Positions 4,484 through 64,000 of a stretch of DNA of 64,000 nucleotides are shown here, piece after piece; the first letter of the stretch is position 1; every line of letters starts with the position of its first letter. A program made the position numbers and the translations under genes. Below the pieces are notes generated by a model. That model ran no database searches and was not told where the DNA came from. It saw nothing but the letters and a program-made list of their open reading frames with translations. The DNA comes from Perkinsela sp. CCAP 1560/9 (Eukaryota > Protista > Euglenozoa: Kinetoplastea): assembly GCA_965644495.1 (NCBI GenBank), contig CBFFSA010000021.1, forward strand, positions 119,756 to 183,755, given 5' to 3'.

Positions 4484-7400
4484 TTGGAAAAGAGCATGCC
4501 TTCGAAAAGGAAAGTGTCAACGCCGAAGGCGAAAAGCATAGGTGCGAAGAAAGAAATGAGCCCCGAAAAACGATCAACGAAGGCACGAGCAAAGAAAACG
4601 ACACAGCCTAACAATGATGTGGAAGCAAAAAAGGAAACCCGAAAGCGGACAAGTCCGCAACCAGAGTCTAGTAACGTGGAACCAAGAGAAAAACCGACAA
4701 AAAAGAAAGAGCCCCATAAGAGCGGATCAAAATCACACACAGAGAAAGATGGGTGTTCCAACACAGACGAAGACGTACGATCTATTGTCGTGAGTGCGTT
4801 TCAAAAAGCTCAACGCACTTCGGGATCTCATAACGCTCAGCGGAAAGTGTGTATGAAACTTCGCGCCTCCCTCTCTCACTCCGGCCTACTTACGCACACC
4901 ATGTCTTCCTTCCTACTTCGGCTCTACACGGAGGTCTCCTCCTTACCCACAGACGCTATGAATCGACTGATGAGTTTCCTACGTGACTATGTGCTGGAAT
5001 GTCACCGTGAAGACAAAAACGACAACGAGGGGGTGGCTCTAATTGAGTTCTTCCTGCCCTATGAGAACGCGATGGAGAAACACACACGGCTACGTGTGCT
5101 TCACACGCTCCACACCCTTCTGGAGACCCTGGACTATCGCCAGTCCCGTCACGCGCTCTATGACACTCTCGTTGATATCCTGAGGCGTAGGATCCATGAT
5201 AAGGCCCCCGCAGTGGCTGAGCGGGCGGTAAAAACTTGTGCATGTTTTATTTCCCAGGAGGATGTGGTACAGCATCTATTGGGAGTGCTGTGCTCCCATG
5301 AGAGCTCGGCGGTACGCGCTGCAGCCGTCGCGGCGCTCACCCAACACCCTCCGAATGACACAGCGGTGGTACCGCACGTGCTGCGCTGTGTGCGGGACGT
5401 AAGCGCTGTGGTGCGTCGTGAGGCATGGGAGGGGCTGGGGCGGCTGAAATGGAACCGATTTGTGGCGTACTCCGGGGACCAGGTACTGTTTTATCTCCAC
5501 CATGGACTGCAAGAGACCTCCACGGCGCTGCGTACTGCGGTAGCGACCACCGTGCTCTCCTCCTGGACTACTCGGGATAACCACAATGATATTGATGCTA
5601 TGCTCGCCCCGATGGATCTGTCGAATTACACTCACGTGGACACGGTGGTGGGTCGGCTGCTGGCGCATGTCGCACGGATTGAGCCCAGCTGCGGACGTGT
5701 GCCTTTGCGGTTGACAAAACTCACCACACAAAACACGCTGTTGTGGCGATTGTCGGTGGATAGCTGGAATGAGGCCCCCAGGGTTAAGGAGACCGCGTCC
5801 GAGAGCACGACAAAGAGTACCGGCGAGGTGTACGACATGAAGATTGGTGATTACATTTCTCTTTTGCATGGTATTGCGATTCAAATCCATGATCCGAGCA
5901 AGGAGTGTGTGGCGGGGGACGTTCCCATCCATATACTGGACTTTGAAAACCAAAGCCTCTCCATTGTTCGAGAGTTACTTTTAACACTTCCATTATTTGA
6001 AAGCCGTGGGCTTTTACAAACTGCTACGGATAAGGATCGCTCGAAGTTACGCACAACGTTTGCTTTACTGTTCACAGCTGCCGTGGAAGACGACGCTCGA
6101 ATTCTAGTAAAGGAGTGCATGCATTCCGCTCCACTGGTGATGCAGCAGGATGACTTAGTGGCGCTGCTAACACATAGTTTAGAGCGATTGTACAGTCACC
6201 TGGGCGTCGTGTCCCGAAACCGAATCTGTCTGGACGACGTAGAAGCCTACATTCAAGCCGAATCGAAGAGAGGTTCGGTGAAGGCGTCTCGAATTTCTCC
6301 CGAAGTTGAACGTGAAATTGAGGTCGATACCGTATACCTGCTACGAATGGCATACATTGTACATTGCTGGCTCGGTATTCATCGAAAGAAGGGGGTCTCC
6401 ATTCCGAGCACATTTTTACAGATTTTGAAGCTTTGTCGAGAGAGCTCACTCTCGTCTGACGTTAAGGCACAGGCCATACGTGCGACGGCAATGGTGTGTT
6501 TTCTTCATGCCGACACCGTAAGTACCTTCTTTAATGTGATTCACAAGAACCTTCACGATTCTCACAGCACCATATCGAGCGCTTCAGCGGAGGCTATTAT
6601 CGATCTCATGTGCGAGTACGGAGTAAAAATATTTATGCCCACAACAACGAAAAGTGATAGCGCGGCTCTTGTAGCTGAAAGAGAAGCCACCTCCCAGGAA
6701 CTCTACGCCAAACTCCTCAATGAGCTCTTGCAGGGCGACAAAAACCAACTCCCCATCCACGTCGGGATCTGCAAACTCCTCTCCTGTGGCCGAATTAAAG
6801 TCGAGGACAGCACGGCAGTAATGACCCCCCTGCTCGAGCACCTTTTCCGCCAACAATTTCTCCAAGACAAAACCCACAAACACCACCCCGAGGACCTACG
6901 CTCGATCCAATGCCTGGACACGTTCTTCACCCTCTACGCCCACTCCCACCCCCGCCGCATGTACGCCGTCGCCCAATCCGCCATCGCGGTCCTCCAATCC
7001 CTCCTCCCCCACCCCGCACTCACCCGTCAAGACTTCCGCAAAATCTGGCAACGCATCCTCTACCTCACCGATGCCTGGCACCTCTCCTGTGTCCGCCAAC
7101 TCGACCCCGAGGCCTCCGTGAAATACTCCCTCTCCCGCGAGGGCGAACCCCCCCACAGTGAGGACGAACTCGACAACAACAACAACAACAACACGCTTCC
7201 CCCCCACACGAACCGTACCCGCGCCCACTCCCCCTACCCCTACCCCTCCCCCTACGGCCGCTCCCTCTCCCGCGAGCTCTCCCGGTGCAGCTGCCACGAG
7301 CGCCTCACGCTCGCGATGCTCATCGAGGCCCTGTGCCTTCCCCGGCCCGTGGCCGCGGCCCGGGTCCTCCCCGGGCTCACCGCGATCCGGGTCTATAAGC

Positions 7401-8302
7401 GGGACCCGGTGCTGCTGGCGCAGCTGCGGGTGGCCGCGCTGCGGTGCGTGGGGGGGGTGGCCGCGGGGAGTGCGGAGCTGCAGCGGCCGCTGCGGGCACT
7501 GCTGCGCGCGCTGGGGAGGGTGGAGGGGGGGGAGGGGGGGGTGGAGCCGGGGAGGCAACAGGGACAGGGGGAAGGGGGGGAGGGGGTAGAGGGGACACGG
7601 GAGGGGTCGGGGGTAAGGGGGAACGGGGGTAAGGGGGTAGAGGGGTACCCTGGGGGGACACGGGAGGGGTCGGGGGGGAGGGGGAACGGGGGTAAGGGGG
7701 TGGAGGGGTACCCTGGGGGGACACGGGAGGGGTCGGGGGTAAGGGGGGACGGGTGGGGGGTGGATTATGGTGTGGCTACGTATTTGTCCTCCCGTGCGGT
7801 GTCGGTGGCGACGACACGGAATATGGAGGATACGGTAACCGCGATGGTGGAGATGAGGATGGGGAGGGGGAGGGGGGTGTTGGGGGTTTCGCGAAAGGGG
7901 GTGAAGGAGGTGGGGGGAGAGAAGGAGGACAGGGTAAAAGATGAGGATGCGGAAGAGGAAACGGTGTTGAGTGGGAAGAGACGAGGGGTGGCGGCGGGGA
8001 AGGAGGATGGAGATTCTGTGGGGACGAAGAAGGTATCGGGCAAGAAAGCGGCAAGTGTGGCGAAGTCTCCGCGTTCGTCTCGCAGTTCTATACGGGAGAG
8101 TGCAAAGTCAGCCTCTCAGCGGAGTTCATTGCGGAAGGGATCACAGGAGATAAGTCCACGAAGAAAAGGAGAGCAAAGTTTTTCATCAGCTCCGTCTCCA
8201 ATGTCTACGCATTCCATGAGTACGAGGAGTAGTAGAAAAGGTGCGACGGCGTGTGAAGAAGTTTTCGTATCATCGCAGAGAAGTACAAGGAAAGGTAGAT
8301 GA
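4484..8302 (+). CDS. CAPG: Condensin complex subunit CAP-G (Cnd3/Ycg1), HEAT-repeat protein; first ATG at 4496
   Basis: FQKAQ..GSH, RLRVL, RIHDKAPAV and CVRDVSAVVR HEAT motifs; Cnd3-like GICKLL and QCLDTFFTLYA; basic low-complexity termini. Confidence 0.8.
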   Translation: MEKSMPSKRKVSTPKAKSIGAKKEMSPEKRSTKARAKKTTQPNNDVEAKKETRKRTSPQPESSNVEPREKPTKKKEPHKSGSKSHTEKDGCSNTDEDVRSIVVSAFQKAQRTSGSHNAQRKVCMKLRASLSHSGLLTHTMSSFLLRLYTEVSSLPTDAMNRLMSFLRDYVLECHREDKNDNEGVALIEFFLPYENAMEKHTRLRVLHTLHTLLETLDYRQSRHALYDTLVDILRRRIHDKAPAVAERAVKTCACFISQEDVVQHLLGVLCSHESSAVRAAAVAALTQHPPNDTAVVPHVLRCVRDVSAVVRREAWEGLGRLKWNRFVAYSGDQVLFYLHHGLQETSTALRTAVATTVLSSWTTRDNHNDIDAMLAPMDLSNYTHVDTVVGRLLAHVARIEPSCGRVPLRLTKLTTQNTLLWRLSVDSWNEAPRVKETASESTTKSTGEVYDMKIGDYISLLHGIAIQIHDPSKECVAGDVPIHILDFENQSLSIVRELLLTLPLFESRGLLQTATDKDRSKLRTTFALLFTAAVEDDARILVKECMHSAPLVMQQDDLVALLTHSLERLYSHLGVVSRNRICLDDVEAYIQAESKRGSVKASRISPEVEREIEVDTVYLLRMAYIVHCWLGIHRKKGVSIPSTFLQILKLCRESSLSSDVKAQAIRATAMVCFLHADTVSTFFNVIHKNLHDSHSTISSASAEAIIDLMCEYGVKIFMPTTTKSDSAALVAEREATSQELYAKLLNELLQGDKNQLPIHVGICKLLSCGRIKVEDSTAVMTPLLEHLFRQQFLQDKTHKHHPEDLRSIQCLDTFFTLYAHSHPRRMYAVAQSAIAVLQSLLPHPALTRQDFRKIWQRILYLTDAWHLSCVRQLDPEASVKYSLSREGEPPHSEDELDNNNNNNTLPPHTNRTRAHSPYPYPSPYGRSLSRELSRCSCHERLTLAMLIEALCLPRPVAAARVLPGLTAIRVYKRDPVLLAQLRVAALRCVGGVAAGSAELQRPLRALLRALGRVEGGEGGVEPGRQQGQGEGGEGVEGTREGSGVRGNGGKGVEGYPGGTREGSGGRGNGGKGVEGYPGGTREGSGVRGDGWGVDYGVATYLSSRAVSVATTRNMEDTVTAMVEMRMGRGRGVLGVSRKGVKEVGGEKEDRVKDEDAEEETVLSGKRRGVAAGKEDGDSVGTKKVSGKKAASVAKSPRSSRSSIRESAKSASQRSSLRKGSQEISPRRKGEQSFSSAPSPMSTHSMSTRSSRKGATACEEVFVSSQRSTRKGR
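7580..7755 (+). repeat. G-rich 63-bp in-frame tandem repeat (about 2.5 copies, unit GGTREGSGVRGNGGKGVEGYP)
   Basis: ACACGGGAGGGGTCGGGG recurs at 7595, 7658 and 7721; many G4-G7 runs. Confidence 0.9.
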
Positions 8303-49265: not shown

Positions 49266-49947
49266 GGCGGTGTGGGCGTAGTTGGTAGACGGTGGGCCTT
49301 ACAACCTGCAGGTTGTTGGTTCGATTCCCGCTATCGACAAAACTCGCAACCTGGCGGCCTCACTACAAGGGGAAAGCGATCAGGAGTGCCTTCAAGGCCC
49401 ACACCCAACCCCGCTCCCCTGGAGGACCGACCCGGAACCGCCGAGCTGAACCAGGCTCCAGCGCAGCCGCTAAATTGCGAGCTGCTTACGCAAAGGAGGC
49501 TTGAGACACAGCCTACACGATGCAACGGGGTGGACGCCCGTCCTGGTAGCTACGGTTGGGTAGCCGTGCTCGGGCCGCAAGGCGCCGAGTGCCGTCTGGG
49601 AAGGGGGTAGCAAGACGATGAAAGTCGGTGACCTGAGACTCCACCCTAACGGTTGGCACTGCAGAGCCCTCCGTGTCTTCTTCTTATCCTTGGGTAGGAA
49701 ACTACCCAAGGATTTCATTTCAAATACCCAATATTTCACGCACCAGCATACCAGACTGAGGTTTGTTGTGGTTTGGTTGGAAAGAGGTCAAAAAAAAGGC
49801 TGGGGAAACCTTGACCTCCTCCGGCGGGCATTACCGCCAGCAGGGCACCTGCAGTGAGCCTCACGGTAAGGACTCATAGTTCCGTACCATTGGTTTTTCA
49901 CTCGGTAATCCCGACTGCGTTGTCCCCGATATGTATTATTATATTAT
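49266..49947 (+). mobile_element. tRNA-headed SINE-like element (degenerate tRNA-Val(TAC)-like head 49266-49339, structured body, (ATT)n tail)
   Basis: A-box-like TGGGCGTAGTTGG, CTTACAA loop and B box GGTTCGATTCCC; stems are mismatched; TATTATTATTATTA at about 49934-49947. Confidence 0.55.
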
Positions 49948-51700: not shown

Positions 51701-53061
51701 TGTAGTCAATTGATGAGACAATAAATTTACCGCGTCCAACATTGGCTAATTCCGAAAGCGGGGCATCGATGGATGCGCAATACTTCCTTTCCAGAGCACA
51801 CTTGTATTTTTACAAACTTTTTTCTCTAAGCTTCCATCGCTAGCTTCATCTTTTTCTTCTTCTATGCCCAGCTCATCAGTGCTTTCCACACCCATGAGAT
51901 GAATGAAATATGGCATGCGGTACGTTCAGTATAAGGTGCCGTATGAGAAACTCCTGTGTAAATCCTAAATTCGACTGATGAAATAAGAGTCTTAATCTTC
52001 TTTTCTTTTTTCTCTGGATAATGTGCTTTACCACTAAATCCTAGAAAAACATAGACGTAGAACATGGTCTGTAGAAATGTATAAATTATGCATGATTTGT
52101 TTTTGGAGAAATAGTAATAAAATTTATATGTAATAATATACACGTATGTATGTCACGTGTATGTCACGCGGTCGGTGTCGGGGGCGTTTTTCCAATTGCG
52201 ACCACCACACGGGTCATGCTCCACTTCCAAAATCACACGCGCAAACATTCCCTCCACGGCAATGCGCGAACGCAGGAGAACCACGTGCCGCAGCCCACCC
52301 GTCAATTCGCCCGCCTCTGCAGGAAAACTCCGAAGCTGTCGAAGTCTTTCTACAAAGGATGCCGACACTTTCGGGCAATCAACTGTACCAATGTCTGTCC
52401 GCGCCTGCCGAAGCAGTCGTCGGCAGACCGCTCCAAGAGACCTCTCATGACGGTCTCGAGCCTTTTCAATAATTCGATCCTCCTCTTTTTGTTGAGATCC
52501 GTGAGATATACTTTAGATATTTAATGGCCCATGCTACGTTACATATTATATTCACTCAAAATAATAGTTTCGCGTGTTTTCCGTTCCTTTATTTATTCAC
52601 ATGTTACCAGAGTTTGCGCACACACCTATCGAAATGTCTCCTACGCACTCTATACGCACGAAAAATAAAGGTAACCTGATAAATGAAAAGGGGAAACGAT
52701 CAAGATCCAAGGAGAAGCGTGAAAATGCGAATACGCACAACAACCAAAAAACACGAAAAACTGATGGAAAAAGGAGTACGAATACATATTCACCAGGATT
52801 AGCAGAGGTAACTTTAGCAAGAAAGCATCCACAAAGAAAGCGAGCTAATTGTGAAGAGGAGTGCAAGAGAACTCGAAAGGGGGGGAGCTCTTCTTCTAAA
52901 ACGTGATTTTGGAAGCCCAAAAGTTGAATGGAGTATCATTTTATTTATTTTGTTTATTTATTTATTTTTACTTTTATTTTATATTCAATAATGCGATTAA
53001 TTGGTCTGTTTCAGCAGTTGAAGAGGGGGTTGTGAGACGAAGGGTTGTTCATATATTTATA

Positions 53062-53442
53062 AACCCCCCACAGCGAAAAGTCACCCCCCTCTAACTTTTC
53101 AGCCAAGTGTCCGTTTGAGCTCATTTTTGTTGCATTTTGCTGTTCCCAACACAAAGACTATGCGCGTTATAGCATGAAACCAAGGCTCTCAAATGCGTGC
53201 ATCCGATAGATGGATTATCACTTTCTTCACATTTTTCAAGAGGCCAATTTCTCACACTTTAACAAATTATATCTTCTCCTCCCATGAGAATTCTAATTAT
53301 TTCTGTCCGTTTTTGCTGATTTTTGTTGCAAACGAGAGATCTCGTTCTCCTAGCAAAGATCTTTGCCGCTATTTTTTAATATTGACCCACTTGTGCCCCC
53401 TGGCCGCGGAGTGTTTGTTTTCCTAAATTATTGTGGTATGAC
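53062..53442 (+). mobile_element. Truncated left part of the MITE at 59454-60388
   Basis: Near-identical to 59454-59846 apart from a short duplication in the 59-kb copy; fused directly to Tc1 internal sequence at 53442. Confidence 0.9.
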
Positions 53443-54494
53443 AGCTGCGCCGCGAGGGCGTTGCTGATGTTGTTCCTCAGTCTATCCGAGTTTCGATGCA
53501 CCGCTTCGGACACAAAGGTAGAAAGCGTGTCCGCAAGCCCTACCTGTCCAAGCGCCATCGCAAGCTTCGGATGGACTTTGCCACGGCCCATGAGCACTGG
53601 ACAGTGCACGACTGGGCTCCAGTTGTATGGTCGGACGAGACGAAGATCTCGCGCTTTGAAACGGGGGGAAGTCTTTGGACATGGGGGACCCCGGGGGAGG
53701 AACTGGGTGAAAAAGGGGTAATTCCCACGGTAAAGTACGGAGGGGGGCACATCATGATTTGGGCGTGCATGTCCCGAAGCGGTGTGGGGCATGTGCGTCT
53801 AGTTCAAGGGAACCTGAACGCCACACAGTACGTCGAGATTCTTGAAGAGAATCTTGCCCCCTCCATCGAAACTATGGGTCTAGACCCCCCAATGGTCATC
53901 TTCCAACAAGATAATGACCCCAAGCACACAAGCCATTGTGCGCAACGGCACCTCCGGGGTACCGGGTTTGAAGTCATGCGGTGGCCCACGCAGTCCCCTG
54001 ACTTAAATCCAATCGAAAACGTTTGGGGGGAACTCAAGCGGCGCCTTGCAGCGCACGATGATCCACCAAGCGGGGTCCGAGAGTTGTGGGAGAGGGTAAA
54101 AATGGAATGGGCGAACATACCACCCTCAGTATGTCGTGCCCAGGTGGACAGTATGCCTGCCCGTATGAAGGCAGTGCTGAAGGCTCGTGGGGGGAATACT
54201 AAATACTAATTTTAGGGGCATAATCTCTCTTGGGCGATTACGTTTCATCTATTTTTTGGGACAAGATTTTCTCTATAATAGGTAGCAAAAAAACCTTTCG
54301 AATGCTAAACTTTTTTATATTCATTCTTATTTCTTTGGTAGAACGAACTGAGGTGAACTATCTACGGGTACTATTAGGTGACACTCATGCCTACACTACT
54401 AGCACACATTACCAGCGCAACGGTGATATTTAATCAATAGCTCTATACAAAAGAAAAAAAAACCGAAACATTCGAACGGTTTTTTTGCTGACTG
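53442..54494 (+). mobile_element. 5'-truncated Tc1 (DD34E) arm: transposase C-terminal part (ORF 53496-54209) plus terminus ending ACTG|TA
   Basis: WSDETK, FQQDNDPKH and SPDLNPIENVW motifs; nearly identical to 63241-64000 (offset 9799). Confidence 0.93.
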
Positions 54495-55575
54495 TATGCC
54501 GATGATATTGTGTTCTTTTCACCTGAAAGAAAGACGCTCCAAGAAATGTTAGTAGCCTTAACGAGAGTTGCAGAACGAGCTGGGCTTAAACTTAACATAG
54601 GTCCGTCAAAAACAGCTTGGATGGTAATCGGAGGACGATTGAACGTATGGACAAATGATACGATTACTCTAGGAAATTACGGCATTGTACCTAGGGCTGA
54701 CTCATATCGATATCTAGGCCACATGAAACACTCGCATAAGAATCGAGCCACTTTACAAGACCGTATACAATTAGCTTGGAGAGCATTTCATCGCTTAAAG
54801 CCGCTCTGGAGGGAACATTTAAGTGTAACGCTCCGCCTGAGAATATTTAATGCTCTTGTAACATCAGTTTTGTCGTACGGTTTAGCCTCTTTGGTTCCGA
54901 CAGGTGTAGAATTAAAGATACTTGACACAGAAGTCAATAAGATGCGCAGAATAGCGACAGGGACGCCGTTGTGGGATGGTTATAGCAAATACCAACATGT
55001 GCGCTGTATAGGGGAGAACCGAAAGTTTCAACGCTCCTGAGAGTCAACCGCGCTAAACTAGTTGGACACCTTTTGCGGCATGATTCCCCTATTGCGAATG
55101 TTGCATTATGGAACATAAGGGAAGAGGCACGCATACGCTCATTGACTGAAGCTTGTGCCCAGGATCTAGCAATAGATCCAATAGAAATGCACGAACGGGC
55201 ACTTGATCGATGTTCTTGGCGTAATCTTATTCAGAATTTGTACCAACGACTAGAACCTATCGCCTATTATAATCCTTTTGATTCAACTAAAAGAATAGCA
55301 GAAGTTGCAAAGATTTTGCAATCGAATCAAAACTCTCTGGAAAAATGGCACGCATTGCAGTTTCAAGAGGAGGGTGAGACACTTTGGCCCCATAACAACT
55401 TGCTTCATATATATTGTGATGGTTCAGTGAGAAAGCTTTCGAACAATATATTCGCAGGGGCATGTGCTGTAGCCTTCGAAGGAAACGAGATTCTAGCGAC
55501 TAACGACAAAACATTGGACTCTATTAACGCAACACCAATACGGGCAGAGCTTTCAGCTTTCTTATTGGCATACGG
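54495..55575 (+). mobile_element. LINE 3' half: RT from YADD onward, then RNase H (frameshifted, truncated)
   Basis: TAT GCC GAT GAT = YADD, GLKLNIGPSKT and YRYLG; RNase H IYCDGS..RAELSA. Confidence 0.85.
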
Positions 55576-56875: not shown

Positions 56876-57187
56876 TTGCCGCTTGCACGTGTTCTGGGCG
56901 TCCAGCAAAGCCCTGTTAGTGCTGTAGAAAGAAAACATCGGAAATACGTTGTAGAGAAAGGATTAGAACCAGAGTATTTTCGTTGCATCGCTTTAACGGA
57001 TTGTGGAATGTTACATGAAGATGCCAAGGTCTTGATCAAAGCCCTTGCAAAACGAGCGGATTCTGACCCAAAAGTTATACTTGAAGCTTTTCAATTGGAA
57101 AATGAAAAGTTTGCGGCTTACACTATCGTATCGCAATTGCGGAACCACATACAGGGAGAAAAATGGCTAGGTGGCATAAGCCTTTGA
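56876..57187 (+). mobile_element. C-terminal remnant of a restriction-like-endonuclease non-LTR retroelement (CRE-like)
   Basis: ERKHRKY..FRCIAL..G.LH..K.LI.ALA is paralogous to the end of 57858-58376. Confidence 0.6.
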
Positions 57188-57690
57188 AGCCAAATAATCT
57201 TCTAGTCTCCAAAGTCAAGTCTATCTCGTATTATTCAACATGGGCACAGATACAGGACCCAACAACAACATGGGCACAGATACAGGACACTAAACTCTGA
57301 GGGCTATTAAAAGGACAAAATTCCTTTTTGTTTAAGAAAGAAAGGTATTTTCTTTAGAAATAGATTTTTATATGAGGAAAATCCATATAAAAAGTGGGTA
57401 GGCTTCCGGTGGGCCTAGGAGGGTGCACACCAAAAAAAAATTATATCTACGTATAAATATACATCATCATCATACGATAATGAGAACTTGTGAAAGTAAT
57501 TGAAGCATTTATATGTAGAATAAGAAGTATGCATGCTGATCGAATTATTTATGATTAATTATGCAGTGTGATTTCAAAAGACCTTTCCATTCACGCTCTT
57601 CCTCAAAAACCCCCTTTTTGTTTAATACCCCCTTTATATACCCGTGTGGGATGCTAATCCCCACGTGGGACGTACGAAACCATGTAGTCC

Positions 57691-57857: not shown

Positions 57858-58376
57858 TTGAAAGCTGGCATTCCTTGTGAGAAGGAACCGCGCCTATATT
57901 CAACGTATCGGTGCACGCAATGCAATGAAGTAGTCGGGCCAGAATACAGGCAGACACATAGTAAAGTGTGCGGAGGGAAATCTTTTCGGCGCTCTGGACC
58001 AGATCTCGTAATTTACTGGAATGATGGAGAAATATATTACGATTTCACCGTGGTACATGAATTAGCGCCTTCAAATTTGGGAACGAAATGCAATAAGCTA
58101 TTCCGGGACGCCATCAAACGAAAACACGATACTTATGTCGCAACAAATAAAATCGCGAAAGAAAAATTCAGATGTATTCCCATCCTCTATGGTGGATCCC
58201 TCCATTTCAATACGAAGTCGCTGTTAATGGCCCTCGCAGATGCGGGCAGCGTACCTCGACAGCAGCTTCAGCTTGAGCTACAACTTTTGCTACAGGAGCA
58301 AAATGGTGCCATACTATATTCACAACTTCGGAATTACCTTGAGAAGGACAAGGGGGCACTCCAGTTCGCTATATAA
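57858..58376 (+). mobile_element. Restriction-like endonuclease domain of a CRE/SLACS-type non-LTR retrotransposon (3' fragment)
   Basis: EPR, CxxC..H..C, GPDL..YYDFTVVH (PD..D) and K.K..Y. Confidence 0.7.
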
Positions 58377-58501
58377 AGAGTTTCTAAAGAGGGGAAGAGC
58401 TTCTAAAGCCTGCAGTCAGGATAGATTTTTCAGAACTTGAGATAGTAATTGGCGCATTTACATAACATATATACATGTATATATATACATGTATATATAT
58501 A

Positions 58502-59433
58502 AACCCCCGCTCACGAAAAGTGACCCCCCTCTTTTTTTTTGTACAAATGTCCGTTTGAGCTGATTTTTGTTGCATTTTGCAGATCTCAACACAAGGACTT
58601 TGCGCGTGAAGAAATGAGACAAAAAGAAACGAATACGCACAATTTAGAGAAGAATTACCATTTTGTCACTTTTTCGCCCTTCAATCTTATACACTCCTTA
58701 AGTCCAGAATCAAAACTTAATACTGTTTTGTCGATCACTTTTTGAGTTAAAGAAGATCATGCTTTACGTACACATCGGATAAGTGAAGGTTTGTCCGATG
58801 GCGTTTGTTCGTCTACCGCCTCTTGGACCATAGACCAGACGTTTTCTATGGGGGAAAGGTCGGGCGAGTTGGGGGGCCAGTTTCTTAGAACATCACTCAT
58901 TCGATTCTCAATATACTCTTTGGAGGCACGGGCAGTATGTGCCGTTGCTCTATCCTGTTGAAATACACTATTAGGGGGAAATCTACCTGTTTTAATGTTT
59001 CTATGTACGTCTCACTTGTAATAGATGTGTCATTGTAGATGTCTCACTTGTAATAGATGGTCACAGGACTCAAAGTGTATTCCTCACTAGATTTTTTTTC
59101 GTTCTGATATTTTTTGATTATCCTTCTAGAGACGTTAAAATCACGGGATAATTGTTTAATCGGAACACCTTCTGCCTGTCTCATCTTCAAAAGAACCTTA
59201 CCACAATCCGTAAGCCCCCTTTTGGGAGCCGATATGGTGATTTTGTCATTTTTGGAAAAAAAAGTTGAAAAACCAATTATGTTTTTGTGACTAAATTTTA
59301 AAATTTTAAAATCAGCTAAAAACAGCGGGAACGTATAGATCTCGAAATTTTGAACGAAACAGTGGTATGATAACCCACCCACGCCCCTCTGTGCTAAAAA
59401 TAAGGGGGGGTCACTTATTCGTGAGCGGAGGTT
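58502..59433 (-). mobile_element. Internally deleted Tc1-like (D35E spacing) transposon inserted in (TA)n
   Basis: TIRs AACCCCCGCTCACGAAAAGTGAC / GTCACTTATTCGTGAGCGGAGGTT; minus strand reads FQQDRATAH..WPPNSPDLSPIENVW (about 58835-58965) with a later in-frame stop; HTH-like remnant at 59100-59240. Confidence 0.85.
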
Positions 59434-59453
59434 TATATATATATATATATATA

Positions 59454-60388
59454 AACCCCCCACAGCGAAAAGTCACCCTCTAACTTTTCCCCCTCTAACT
59501 TTTCAGCCAAGTGTCCGTTTGAGCTCATTTTTGTTGCATTTTGCTGTTCCCAACACAAAGACTATGCGCGTTATAGCATGAAACCAAGGCTCTCAAATGC
59601 GTGCATCCGATAGATGGATTATCACTTTCTTCACATTTTTCAAGAGGCCAATTTCTCACACTTTAACAAATTATATCTTCTCCTCCCATGAGAATTCTAA
59701 TTATTTCTGTCCGTTTTTGCTGATTTTTGTTGCAAACGAGAGATCTCGTTCTCCTAGCAAAGATCTTTGCCGCTATTTTTTAATATTGACCCACTTGTGC
59801 CCCCTGGCCGCGGAGTGTTTGTTTTCCTAAATTATTGTGGTATGACGATGCAAAAAAATCAAACCTAAAAACAATTTTCTTCTTCAGTTTCTAAAATGAT
59901 CTAAAAATGGTGGGAACGTGTAGATCTCAGAATTTTGAACGAGAAAATGATATCTTGACCCCCTTAGGCCCCTTCAAGCAAAAAGTAAAGGGGACAGCTT
60001 AAAAAAGTTGATTTATCACCGTTTCAAGAAAGAACCAATCAAAGAGAAATATTCCACCACGTGACAAATTGAATGTTTGTTATCTGTTTTTGATCATTTT
60101 TGTTGCAATCGAGAGAACTCGTTCCCCTAGCGAAGATCTGTGACACCATTTTCATGTTGACCCCCTTCCCCCCCTGGTCGAGGAACATGGGATTTTTTGG
60201 GTAATATTGGCATGACTATGTAAAAACGTCATTAAAAAAATGAGTTTTAATTTGTTATCTGTGAAGAGGTCTAAAAACAGCGGGAACGTGCAGATCTCAA
60301 AATTTTGAACGAAAAAGTGGTGCCGCAACCCCCCTAAGCCTCGTTGTACAAAAAAAAGAAGGAGGTGACTTATTCGCTGCGGGGGGTT
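59454..60388. mobile_element. Non-coding MITE of the same family as 58502-59433, with an internal diverged duplication of about 370 bp
   Basis: TIRs AACCCCCCACAGCGAAAAGTCAC / GTGACTTATTCGCTGCGGGGGGTT; flanked by (TA)n; shares subterminal blocks GTCCGTTTGAGCT.ATTTTTGTTGC and GGGAACGT..AGATCTC. Confidence 0.85.
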
Positions 60389-60869
60389 TATATATATATT
60401 TATAAATTGTATTTATACGTTATTATTTGTTTTAGTTGTGTTTCGCCAGCAGATAAGGTGGCCAAGTGTATGGGAGGTGAGTTGGAGGACATTTTCGCCC
60501 CTATAGGGCCATTCTCATAAGAAAGTAATGAGGATGCACGAGTTCTTGGCTGCAGATGGACTCTTTGCGCGTAAATTTTATGTGAGTTTACATGGAGAAG
60601 TGTTTATGTTTATGGTGTAAATTGTAAACCCCCCAGCTGATACATATGTATCAGTGTCTTTGTTGTTGTTGTGTTGTATGGTGGGTAGCGTATGAACGGG
60701 TACCCGAGAAGCTGTTTCCGTTCCCCCCCGAAGACGATAGGGTAGTGGTCTGCGGAGGACGTGTCAAAGTTCCAAGGAAGAAGCAGTCTGAGAGGAAGCG
60801 TCGGTATTTCTTTCGGAAAGATGCTGAGCGTGGCAACCTCAGCCAAGAGATTCAAAGCAATTCCAATGC

Positions 60870-61609
60870 CAGGAACAAGAGTTTGACGATTATGTCACTA
60901 AATGTAACAACACTTGACCTTAAAGGGGGTGACAATGACCGAAAACAGTGCTTCTTCAGCAGCAATTTTGCATCTCATTAATGAGGTGTACTCCTCTGGT
61001 CAAATTCCACTCTCTTAGCAGGAAATTCTACACATTTCGATTCCTAAAAAGGGCGACCTTTCAAGTCTTACGAACTGGCAAGCAATCTGTCTCACGAATC
61101 ACATCGTAAAAATAATGAATAACATGATACTGAATCGCATACAAGCGATTATTGAACCAAAACTGAGGAACAACCAATTTGGTTTCCGGCCACTGCGTTC
61201 CACGGTTGGTGCCCAGGCGATCCTAACTGAGATTATTCAAAAAGCATTAAGGGGACCACAAGGCATTTTTCTTGGGTTCGTAGACTTTAAAGGGGCCTTT
61301 CCATCCATATCTCACGGGGCTATTGCAGAATGCTTGACAGCATTTTCAATCCCGCCTATGTTAAATCGAATGATTTTGGCGACAAACGAATCTCCGACAG
61401 GGTATGTGAAAACACAATTTGGCAAAACAGAAAACTTTGAAATCGCATCTGGGGTTCTCCAAGGTGATGTTTTGGCACCTTTATTTTCGTAATGTGTCTC
61501 GACAAGATTTTAGAGTTGGCCATGCAAATCCAATTTTCGGGTTAACTCTTTTTCGTTCGGGAACAAAAAGCCGTGGAGTTCAACAGTTAAGAATAACGGA
61601 CGTGGATTA
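60870..61609 (+). mobile_element. LINE 5' half: APE start (LTIMSLNVTTL) fused by deletion to the RT, up to ITDVD-Y
   Basis: IPKKGD..NW..ICL, NQFGFRP.RST, FVDFKGAF and GVLQGDVLAP; contains a stop and a frameshift; interrupted at TA 61608-61609. Confidence 0.85.
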
Positions 61610-61892
61610 CAGTCAGCAAAAAAACCGTTCGAATGTTTCGGTTTTTTTTTCTTTTGTATAGAGCTATTGATTAAATATCACCGTTGCGCTGGTAATGTGT
61701 GCTAGTAGTGTAGGCATGAGTGTCACCTAATAGTACCCGTAGATAGTTCATCTCAGTTCGTTCTACCAAAGAAATAAGAATGAATATAAAAAAGTTTAGC
61801 ATTCGAAAGGTTTTTTTGCTACCTATTATAGAGAAAATCTTGTCCCAAAAAATAGATGAAACGTAATCGCCCAAGAGAGATTATGCCCTAAA

Positions 61893-62901
61893 TTAGTATT
61901 TAGTATTCCCCCCACGAGCCTTCAGCACTGCCTTCATACGGGCAGGCATACTGTCCACCTGGGCACGACATACTGAGGGTGGTATGTTCGCCCATTCCAT
62001 TTTTACCCTCTCCCACAACTCTCGGACCCCGCTTGGTGGATCATCGTGCGCTGCAAGGCGCCGCTTGAGTTCCCCCCCAAACGTTTTCGATTGGATTTAA
62101 GTCAGGGGACTGCGTGGGCCACCGCATGACTTCAAACCGGTACCCCGGAGGTGCCGTTGCGCACAATGGCTTGTGTGCTTGGGGTCATTATCTTGTTGGA
62201 AGATGACCATTGGGGGGTCTAGACCCATAGTTTCGATGGAGGGGGCAAGATTCTCTTCAAGAATCTCGACGTACTGTGTGGCGTTCAGGTTCCCTTGAAC
62301 TAGACGCACATGCCCCACACCGCTTCGGGACATGCACGCCCAAATCATGATGTGCCCCCCTCCGTACTTTACCGTGGGAATTACCCCTTTTTCACCCAGT
62401 TCCTCCCCCGGGGTCCCCCATGTCCAAAGACTTCCCCCCGTTTCAAAGCGCGAGATCTTCGTCTCGTCCGACCATACAACTGGAGCCCAGTCGTGCACTG
62501 TCCAGTGCTCATGGGCCGTGGCAAAGTCATCCGAAGCTTGCGATGGCGCTTGGACAGGTAGGGCTTGCGGACACGCTTTCTACCTTTGTGTCCGAAGCGG
62601 TGCATCGAAACTCGGATAGACTGAGGAACAACATCAGCAACGCCCTCGCGGCGCAGCTGAGATGATACCTCTCGCGCAGAATTTCCGGAGAACACAAGTC
62701 GTCGCACACGGCGTGTGCACGGCTCGGAAAGCTTTCGAGGGCGTCCACCCTGCATCCTGAGAGTATCAGGCCTTTCTTTTTTAATATCATAGAAATTGTT
62801 GAGATACTTAAATTTACAGTATCAGAGATGGACCTCATAGACACACCGCTGTCGTAGAGCTCTGCAATTTGTTTCTTTACGTAACGTGGTGTGGGCCTCA
62901 T
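61893..62901 (-). pseudogene. Tc1 DD34E transposase, left arm, with two 1-bp deletions (real or sequencing error)
   Basis: 1009 nt against 1011 nt for the intact copy; deletions near 62135 and 62528. Confidence 0.8.
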
Positions 62902-62997
62902 AGAAAATAAGAATTTTAGGTAAGAAGAATTTTAGGTTATAGAGTTTATCTTACACTATTACATTGTTTATCTTACACTGTTACATTTGCACTCTAT

Positions 62998-64000
62998 ATG
63001 AGGCCCACACCACGTTACGTAAAGAAACAAATTGCAGAGCTCTACGACAGCGGTGTGTCTATGAGGTCCATCTCTGATACTGTAAATTTAAGTATCTCAA
63101 CAATTTCTATGATATTAAAAAAAGAAAGGCCTGATACTCTCAGGATGCAGGGTGGACGCCCTCGAAAGCTTTCCGAGCCGTGCACACGCCGTGTGCGACG
63201 ACTTGTGTTCTCCGGAAATTCTGCGCGAGAGGTATCATCTCAGCTGCGCCGCAAGGGCGTTGCTGATGTTGTTCCTCAGTCTATCCGAGTTTCGATGCAC
63301 CGCTTCGGACACAAAGGTAGAAAGCGTGTCCGCAAGCCCTACCTGTCCAAGCGCCATCGCAAGCTTCGGATGGACTTTGCCACGGCCCATGAGCACTGGA
63401 CAGTGCACGACTGGGCTCCAGTTGTATGGTCGGACGAGACGAAGATCTCGCGCTTTGAAACGGGGGGAATTCTTTGGACATGGGGGACCCCGGGGGAGGA
63501 ACTGGGTGAAAAAGGGGTAATTCCCACGGTAAAGTACGGAGGGGGGCACATCATGATTTGGGCGTGCATGTCCCGAAGCGGTGTGGGGCATGTGCGTCTA
63601 GTTCAAGGGAACCTGAACGCCACACAGTACGTCGAGATTCTTGAAGAGAATCTTGCCCCCTCCATCGAAACTATGGGTCTAGACCCCCCAATGGTCATCT
63701 TCCAACAAGATAATGACCCCAAGCACACAAGCCATTGTGCGCAACGGCACCTCCGGGGTACCGGGTTTGAAGTCATGCGGTGGCCCCCGCAGTCCCCTGA
63801 CTTAAATCCAATCGAAAACGTTTGGGGGGAACTCAAGCGGCGCCTTGCAGCGCACGATGATCCACCAAGCGGGGTCCGAGAGTTGTGGGAGAGGGTAAAA
63901 ATGGAATGGGCGAACATACCACCCTCAGTATGTCGTGCCCAGGTGGACAGTATGCCTGCCCGTATGAAGGCAGTGCTGAAGGCTCGTGGGGGGAATACTA
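62998..64000 (+). CDS. Tc1 DD34E transposase, right arm, open to the window end (predicted 336 aa, stop at about 64008)
   Basis: MRPTPRY..HTH..GRPRKL..WSDETK..QQDNDPKH..SPDLNPIE; 34 residues between the second D and E. Absent from the ORF track because its stop lies outside the window. Confidence 0.9.
   Translation, partial: MRPTPRYVKKQIAELYDSGVSMRSISDTVNLSISTISMILKKERPDTLRMQGGRPRKLSEPCTRRVRRLVFSGNSAREVSSQLRRKGVADVVPQSIRVSMHRFGHKGRKRVRKPYLSKRHRKLRMDFATAHEHWTVHDWAPVVWSDETKISRFETGGILWTWGTPGEELGEKGVIPTVKYGGGHIMIWACMSRSGVGHVRLVQGNLNATQYVEILEENLAPSIETMGLDPPMVIFQQDNDPKHTSHCAQRHLRGTGFEVMRWPPQSPDLNPIENVWGELKRRLAAHDDPPSGVRELWERVKMEWANIPPSVCRAQVDSMPARMKAVLKARGGNT

Follow-up and report, generated by a model that had tools for sequence, protein, structure and literature searches.

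A palindromic Tc1-type transposon with a transposase gene in each of two inverted arms

Canonical Tc1 elements carry a single open reading frame (ORF) between short terminal inverted repeats (TIRs) and duplicate a TA dinucleotide on insertion. The window, which is the whole 64,000-nucleotide stretch of DNA that was analysed, ends at positions 61610–64000 in two inverted arms that are 99.3% alike, with divergent start codons and a 94-bp spacer between them. The locus raises the questions of whether such a palindrome is a transposon that moves as one unit, and why it would carry its gene on both strands. The copies and insertion sites described below make its structure and its mobility as one unit almost certain.

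Architecture of the palindrome

The left arm (61610–62902, minus strand) is 1,293 bp long and consists of the terminus, an end region of ~210 bp, a 3′ non-coding part and the transposase gene. The terminus starts CAGTCAGC and, together with an outer putative transposase-binding motif, occupies 61610–61638 (plus strand); the end is identical on every copy, and the motif resembles the TIR start of two single-ORF relatives (L036 and L037, described below). An inner inverted copy of the terminal motif (61800–61820, minus strand; local alignment p=0.003 vs shuffles) lies ~200 bp inward from the end, an arrangement common to subfamily A′, family B and the TIRs of L036 and L037. The left transposase gene (61893–62901, minus strand; ATG at 62901) is frameshifted in the present assembly by four one-base homopolymer indels, three of which read otherwise in short-read contigs of the family. 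These indels are probably consensus errors, the short-read contigs coming from the family and not specifically from this locus; the equivalent arm of a copy on contig C1 is an intact 336-aa ORF. The unique spacer (62903–62996, 94 bp) is purine-rich in its first half and pyrimidine-rich in its second. The right arm (62997–64000, plus strand) is cut by the end of the contig at 64000, such that the last codons and the right terminus lie outside the assembled sequence; its transposase gene (62998–64000, plus strand) is open for 334 codons, matches HTH_Tnp_Tc3_2 and DDE_3 and contains D146-D238-E273. Over ~1,000 aligned bases, the arms differ at seven places (three substitutions and four single-base indels).

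A first-pass annotation placed outward-facing ATGs at 62901 (minus) and 62998 (plus) across a unique 94-bp spacer, as the sequence confirms, and no terminus motif is present in the spacer between them. It also described two inverted arms of ~1.29 kb, both reaching a CAGT-type terminus; the inversion and the left terminus stand, but only the left arm reaches its terminus inside the window. The YADD continuation that it predicted at about 64293 would lie beyond the contig end, and the empty allele described below takes the place of that check.

Transposases of the DD34E family bind terminal motifs, cut both ends and paste into TA, and the present enzyme is assumed to do likewise. The triad D146, D238 and E273 (spacing 34) is present in both arms of family A, to which the window palindrome belongs, and in both arms of the related family B. 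The N-terminal helix-turn-helix DNA-binding region matches HTH_Tnp_Tc3_2 (E 2e-7) and the GRPR-like linker reads GRPR in A+, A− and B+. The TIRs begin CAGT, and TA precedes 26 of 26 distinct family-A termini, all of one type. The canonical layout is absent, two divergent ORFs sitting inside the repeats in place of one between them. As placed by its predicted protein, its ends and its target-site duplication, the element is a structural variant of Tc1 (DD34E) within Tc1/mariner; the earlier assignment to Tc1 is borne out by the triad and the TA duplication.

Insertion site and copies in the genome

The palindrome interrupts a decayed LINE reverse transcriptase, the 5′ part of which (60650–61609, plus strand; RVT_1 E 7e-19) ends in the left copy of the TA duplication (61608–61609) and matches C11:96717-97678 at 99%. 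The right TA and the 3′ part of the same LINE, from YADD onward, are at 54495–55571 (plus strand; RVT_1 profile 153–203) and match C11:97677-98753 at 100%. On C11 the LINE halves are contiguous and their matches overlap by exactly two bases, a single TA; a 2.6-kb contig of the independent run X1 likewise crosses the insertion site without the element. C11 is an allele of the region on the window contig C21 (99% over 6.4 kb; C11:89451-105917). Since the empty site is present both on C11 and in X1, the insertion is real and came with a TA duplication, and its polymorphism indicates recent movement. The first-pass proposal that the palindrome inserted as one unit agrees with these empty sites. 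It had also joined the LINE halves with the help of a second terminus at 54494/54495; the halves do join, but that terminus belongs to an upstream, partly deleted duplicate and not to the visible palindrome. The duplicate retains the 3′ part of a right arm (53442–54494, plus strand; arm position 244 to the terminus) and has lost the left arm, the spacer and 243 bp of the right arm. A tandem duplication that ran between two copies of a 940-bp MITE in direct orientation accounts for the reversed order of the LINE halves on C21, although a mis-join of two alleles may be the source of this order and is expected to look the same.

Two adjacent non-coding Tc1-like MITEs of ~940 bp lie in (TA)n at 58493–59443 and 59443–60400 of the window, and each family has many copies at 92–99%. 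C11 also carries a 2.3-kb insertion (98754-101082) that is missing from C21.

A search of the genome gives 66 matches. The copy at C1:3079538-3082226 is a complete 2,689-bp palindrome with TA at both ends, unrelated flanks and two intact 336-aa genes, and the locus recurs with two 336-aa ORFs in ENA assembly ERZ24900291. Another full palindrome in this genome, at C1:1791098-1793762, has two stop-free ORFs in both assemblies. ERZ24900291 matches the present genome base for base at common loci and is thus a second assembly that probably does not represent an independent strain. With the window copy included, the genome has the A spacer at 11 places, in answer to the genome-wide count that the first-pass annotation had called for, and independent palindromic copies are present.

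It is scarcely credible that the palindrome is a one-off rearrangement or an artefact of fold-back or chimeric reads. The contig does break inside the palindrome, and no listed piece in public runs spans the whole stretch. However, the flanks differ on each side, TA is duplicated relative to the empty allele, the same asymmetric spacer is found at many loci, the arms differ by substitutions, the build occurs in four subfamilies, and the same C1 copies appear in the second assembly. For the family, an assembly artefact is rejected by the empty allele, the many-locus spacer and the second assembly; confinement to chimeric or fold-back reads, an outcome that the first-pass annotation had itself envisaged, is contradicted by the spacer at many loci and by the recurring C1 copies.

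Most copies have lost part of an arm, and the full copies that were read sit in repeat islands. The inner breakpoints of the truncated copies differ and run into unrelated sequence, none being alike except in allelic or duplicated pairs, so the one-armed copies are decay products; by this comparison of breakpoints, one-armed family-A copies are separate deletions of the palindrome. In two of them (L003 and L007) one gene is intact or almost so, and 7–12 bases are all that is left of the other terminus. A derivative with one full arm and gene and an internally deleted second arm is present at two unrelated sites (L029 and L031), and two genes are therefore not needed in cis for transposition. 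Among the 30 loci read there was no conventional family-A parent in which the left end is of a separate type, nor was any family-A copy read built as an ordinary single-ORF element, as would be the case if the palindrome were the exception.

Several other structures were considered. A conventional family-A parent with a distinct left end is rejected by the absence of common sequence at the inner breakpoints, two independent head-to-head insertions by the absence of inner ends, and a composite transposon, with two complete elements around a cargo, by the lack of a terminus motif in the spacer. A non-autonomous 3′-3′ foldback derivative needing a conventional parent is rejected by the two intact ORFs together with the lack of a family-A parent among the 30 loci.

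The two arms of a copy are maintained together. Between-copy divergence predicts 16 and 10.6 arm differences in two near-complete A copies, vs 3/1296 and 4/1000 observed, and in L039, a family-B copy, both arms carry the same changes, which are absent from the reference copy. Within-copy differences below the between-copy expectation and the matching changes in L039 show that arms are homogenised within a copy, by what we infer to be conversion or templated repair. Homogenisation fades in old deleted A copies. Leucine-rich-repeat genes are often neighbours of these insertions (L007, L015, L025, L030, L031, L035 and L039).

Related families and formation of the palindrome

The build is common to subfamilies A, A′, B and B′. 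Subfamily A′ has 82% nucleotide identity to A and consists of head-to-head pairs, two-armed like A, whose spacer is homologous to that of A (p=0.002) and has the same polarity; dN/dS between A and A′ is 0.11, reflecting purifying selection on the protein. The polymorphic insertion, the near-identical copies and this ratio are indirect indications that fit cut-and-paste mobility. Family B has 52% protein identity to A, its dS relative to A being saturated, and is represented by a palindrome of 2,663 bp flanked by TA, in which both 339-aa genes are intact and the spacer is 57 nt long. Subfamily B′ (79% to B) is also present as head-to-head pairs; three one-armed B′ copies (C13:190361-191711, C2:1301230-1302563 and C4:205941-207243) are outside the set of copies read. 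In a quick tree of 51 proteins A and B are sisters (SH-aLRT 95), and in both the arm boundary is one base outside the ATG on each side. A single origin of the build in the A/B ancestor is the simplest reading of these comparisons, although the A and B builds may have arisen separately given that homology between their spacers is not significant (p=0.10).

The ordinary layout is seen in L036 and L037, the nearest relatives read, which have 42–43% identity and are on long fungal-type contigs of JGI 3300063449; no close relative turned up when JGI metagenome contigs were scanned. Like the present element, they have a DD34E transposase with an N-terminal helix-turn-helix, TA duplication, CAGT termini and an end region of ~210 bp, and in their TIRs of 212–216 bp (about 213 bp) the outer motif and its inner inverted counterpart both recur. 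They differ in having a single ORF, a left half distinct from the right and a leader of ~115 nt that holds a TATA-like box, for which there is no counterpart in the A spacer, whereas the present inverted repeat holds the whole gene twice. Compared with this layout, the left part has been replaced by the inverted right part, and the palindrome thus corresponds to the mirrored right half of an ordinary element, moving as a unit of 2.7 kb whose two ends are identical and of the former 3′ type. In the A/B ancestor, the left half of an element with ~210-bp TIRs, including the left TIR and the promoter, would have been replaced by an inverted right half extending up to the start codon, with the old leader left behind as the spacer. 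With middling confidence, we take the element to be an autonomous Tc1-type transposon whose TIRs grew to include the whole transposase gene.

Bacterial composite transposons such as Tn5 and Tn10 have two inverted transposase-bearing modules that move via their outer ends; unlike these, the present element has neither inner ends nor cargo and its arms cannot move alone. In Rhodnius, the rearranged mariners Rpmar17 and Rpmar49, with long TIRs, similarly have the 5′ part replaced by an inverted 3′ part and both ends of 3′ type, but are short and non-autonomous with transposase fragments only (PMC4678618), whereas here a complete transposase can be encoded by each arm and the build is old. Foldback elements and Galileo (P superfamily) share very long TIRs, TIR extension with conversion and many deletion derivatives, but Galileo has its longest TIRs in ORF-less copies and a single gene between TIRs (PMC3573991). 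Mu killer of maize is likewise an inverted transposase duplication with two copies of one end that gives a read-through hairpin RNA, but contains a partial gene in arms converging from their 5′ ends and is a one-off silencing allele (PMC3440606), not a mobile autonomous family. In the literature, searched incompletely, we found no description of an autonomous two-gene palindromic Tc1/mariner element.

Other Tc1-like sequences occur in the same genome. Transposases 43–49% identical to family A, a possible third family, are at C1:2209615-2210559, C10:458453-459241, C7:476437-477408 and C6:577459-578220. A conventional Tc1-like element at L033:12088-13657, distant from the palindromic families, has 111-bp imperfect TIRs and one 373-aa ORF; there are about 30 ORFs of this type with long open frames in the genome. 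Among family-B copies, L039:3684-6215 is a palindrome minus the spacer and both start codons, with both arms and termini kept, and another (C5:827114-828167) has ~1 kb inserted into its spacer.

Expression and alternative explanations of the two-gene arrangement

Kinetoplastid genes are expressed by strand-specific polycistronic read-through and trans-splicing. The host has 21 consecutive intronless ORFs on the same strand, and in a tree of one gene, a DEAD-box helicase, it groups with Papus and Apiculatamorpha (100/100), Perkinsela and Ichthyobodo not being in the tree. The host is a prokinetoplastid (Prokinetoplastina) by this gene tree, and the same-strand intronless ORFs with the tree uphold the kinetoplastid affiliation proposed in the first-pass annotation. 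Polycistronic expression has been reported for the Prokinetoplastina group (PMC7859406).

The change in the spacer from purine-rich to pyrimidine-rich is significant in A, A′ and B (Fisher p 0.002, 0.008 and 0.001, respectively), and the ~50 nt that precede each ATG on its own strand form a pyrimidine-rich leader devoid of AG (in A). The last AG before the ATG is 29–54 nt upstream in A and B, compared with a host range of 1–71 nt. These features fit a spacer made of two back-to-back trans-splicing leaders without a promoter, composition being weak evidence. A bacterial promoter scan of the element is blank, such a scan being irrelevant here.

An element of this kind would have no promoter of its own, and host polycistronic transcription would enter from either side. 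The incoming transcript would cross the nearer arm antisense and then undergo trans-splicing at an AG in the spacer's distal half, perhaps aided by a pyrimidine tract that is the antisense of the first codons of the other arm. The product would be an mRNA of the far arm, and every insertion in a transcribed cluster could make transposase. For read-through in either orientation as a working mechanism, we judge the prospects to be evenly balanced. Such orientation-free expression would be the most likely reason for retaining two start codons and two leaders, at the price of instability. The first-pass proposal that a gene on each strand would free expression from insertion orientation is in keeping with the spacer composition and with the loss of the TATA-bearing leader. 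That read-through expression was the cause of the two-faced build is a more tentative suggestion, and we are similarly hesitant about a history in which the promoter was given up on entry into kinetoplastids and the two-faced form arose with each arm giving part of the other's trans-splicing signal. Ordinary one-gene Tc1-like families that have open frames abound in this genome, and two genes are thus not needed for survival here. Retained arms have no orientation bias relative to neighbouring host genes (~3 with and 5–6 against).

The second gene may alternatively be a passenger or repair template, caught when fold-back extension of the TIR took in the whole gene and conversion kept the arms alike. 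The homogenisation seen in the arms would by itself hold the second ORF open, one-gene elements do well in this host, and TIR extension by recombination or conversion has been described (PMC3573991; PMC4678618). We consider this structural ratchet unlikely though worth keeping in view, as it leaves unexplained the leader-like look of both unpaired spacer halves in three subfamilies, and gives no account of why both ATGs have stayed at the edges of the arms while the proteins diverged by 48%, or of why amplification continues in the larger form, which is prone to deletion.

At kinetoplastid divergent strand-switch regions genes face outward, as they do here, and the spacer with adjoining arm sequence could be a miniature region of this type, a bidirectional promoter driving its own transcription both ways. 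The full copies being in repeat islands, where read-through is uncertain, would agree with this, yet 57–97 bp leaves very little room for initiation together with two trans-splicing signals, and the A and B spacers have no common motif, TATA-like or other, making such a promoter improbable. Still more improbable is a self-limiting design, in which hairpin RNA feeds silencing and damps the family, the restraint aiding persistence. Unprocessed read-through is predicted to give a 1.3-kb hairpin RNA with a perfect stem (z about −54 for the central 500 nt), Piwi/Argonaute genes are present in the host, and Mu killer in maize is a precedent (PMC3440606). Against this, the protein is under purifying selection although intact ORFs are dispensable for triggering silencing; it is the palindrome that is mobile; and an RNase III domain was not detected in the genome, a weak argument as such genes diverge.

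Long near-perfect palindromes are normally unstable and prone to silencing, and the fold-back Tc1/mariner derivatives known to us are dead passengers. Here the palindrome appears to be the autonomous, recently mobile form and to have persisted through about 48% protein divergence. If read-through and trans-splicing do operate on both strands, the element offers a direct test of the polycistronic constraint on cut-and-paste elements and would be a transposon body plan shaped by the transcription mode of its host; with expression on both strands, the palindrome would also be a natural model for concerted evolution of the arms. Kinetoplastids were long believed to be without DNA transposons, the first report, in 2021, being of an inactive Merlin (PMC8101967); the present host has recently active Tc1 elements. 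The Merlin of Perkinsela and Bodo saltans is likewise a DNA transposase in a kinetoplastid but belongs to another superfamily, has no TIRs or target-site duplications found in Perkinsela and was judged inactive (PMC8101967), in contrast to the recently inserted, polymorphic elements described here. Our search of the literature, itself incomplete, found no account of Tc1 in kinetoplastids, Merlin alone having been reported.

Other DNA transposon superfamilies are represented in the same kinetoplastid by a Merlin-type sequence at L039:7038-7538 (DDE_Tnp_IS1595, weak), a hAT dimerisation region at L032:4871-5494 and a PIF/Harbinger-type sequence at L012:3196-4065 (DDE_Tnp_4). The Piwi-domain genes, at C7:656178-681371, C11:37638 and C21:115027, include three equally scoring 973-aa genes ~11–13 kb apart and a 926-aa Piwi-like gene. 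Elsewhere in the window are a G-rich 63-bp tandem repeat (7540–7779) within the ORF at 4484–8302, a ~425-bp repeat (49267–49692) whose copies cluster on C5, C1 and C15, a ~454-bp repeat (52604–53061) found on several small contigs, and two diverged tails of restriction-like-endonuclease retroelements (56876–57190 and 57858–58376).
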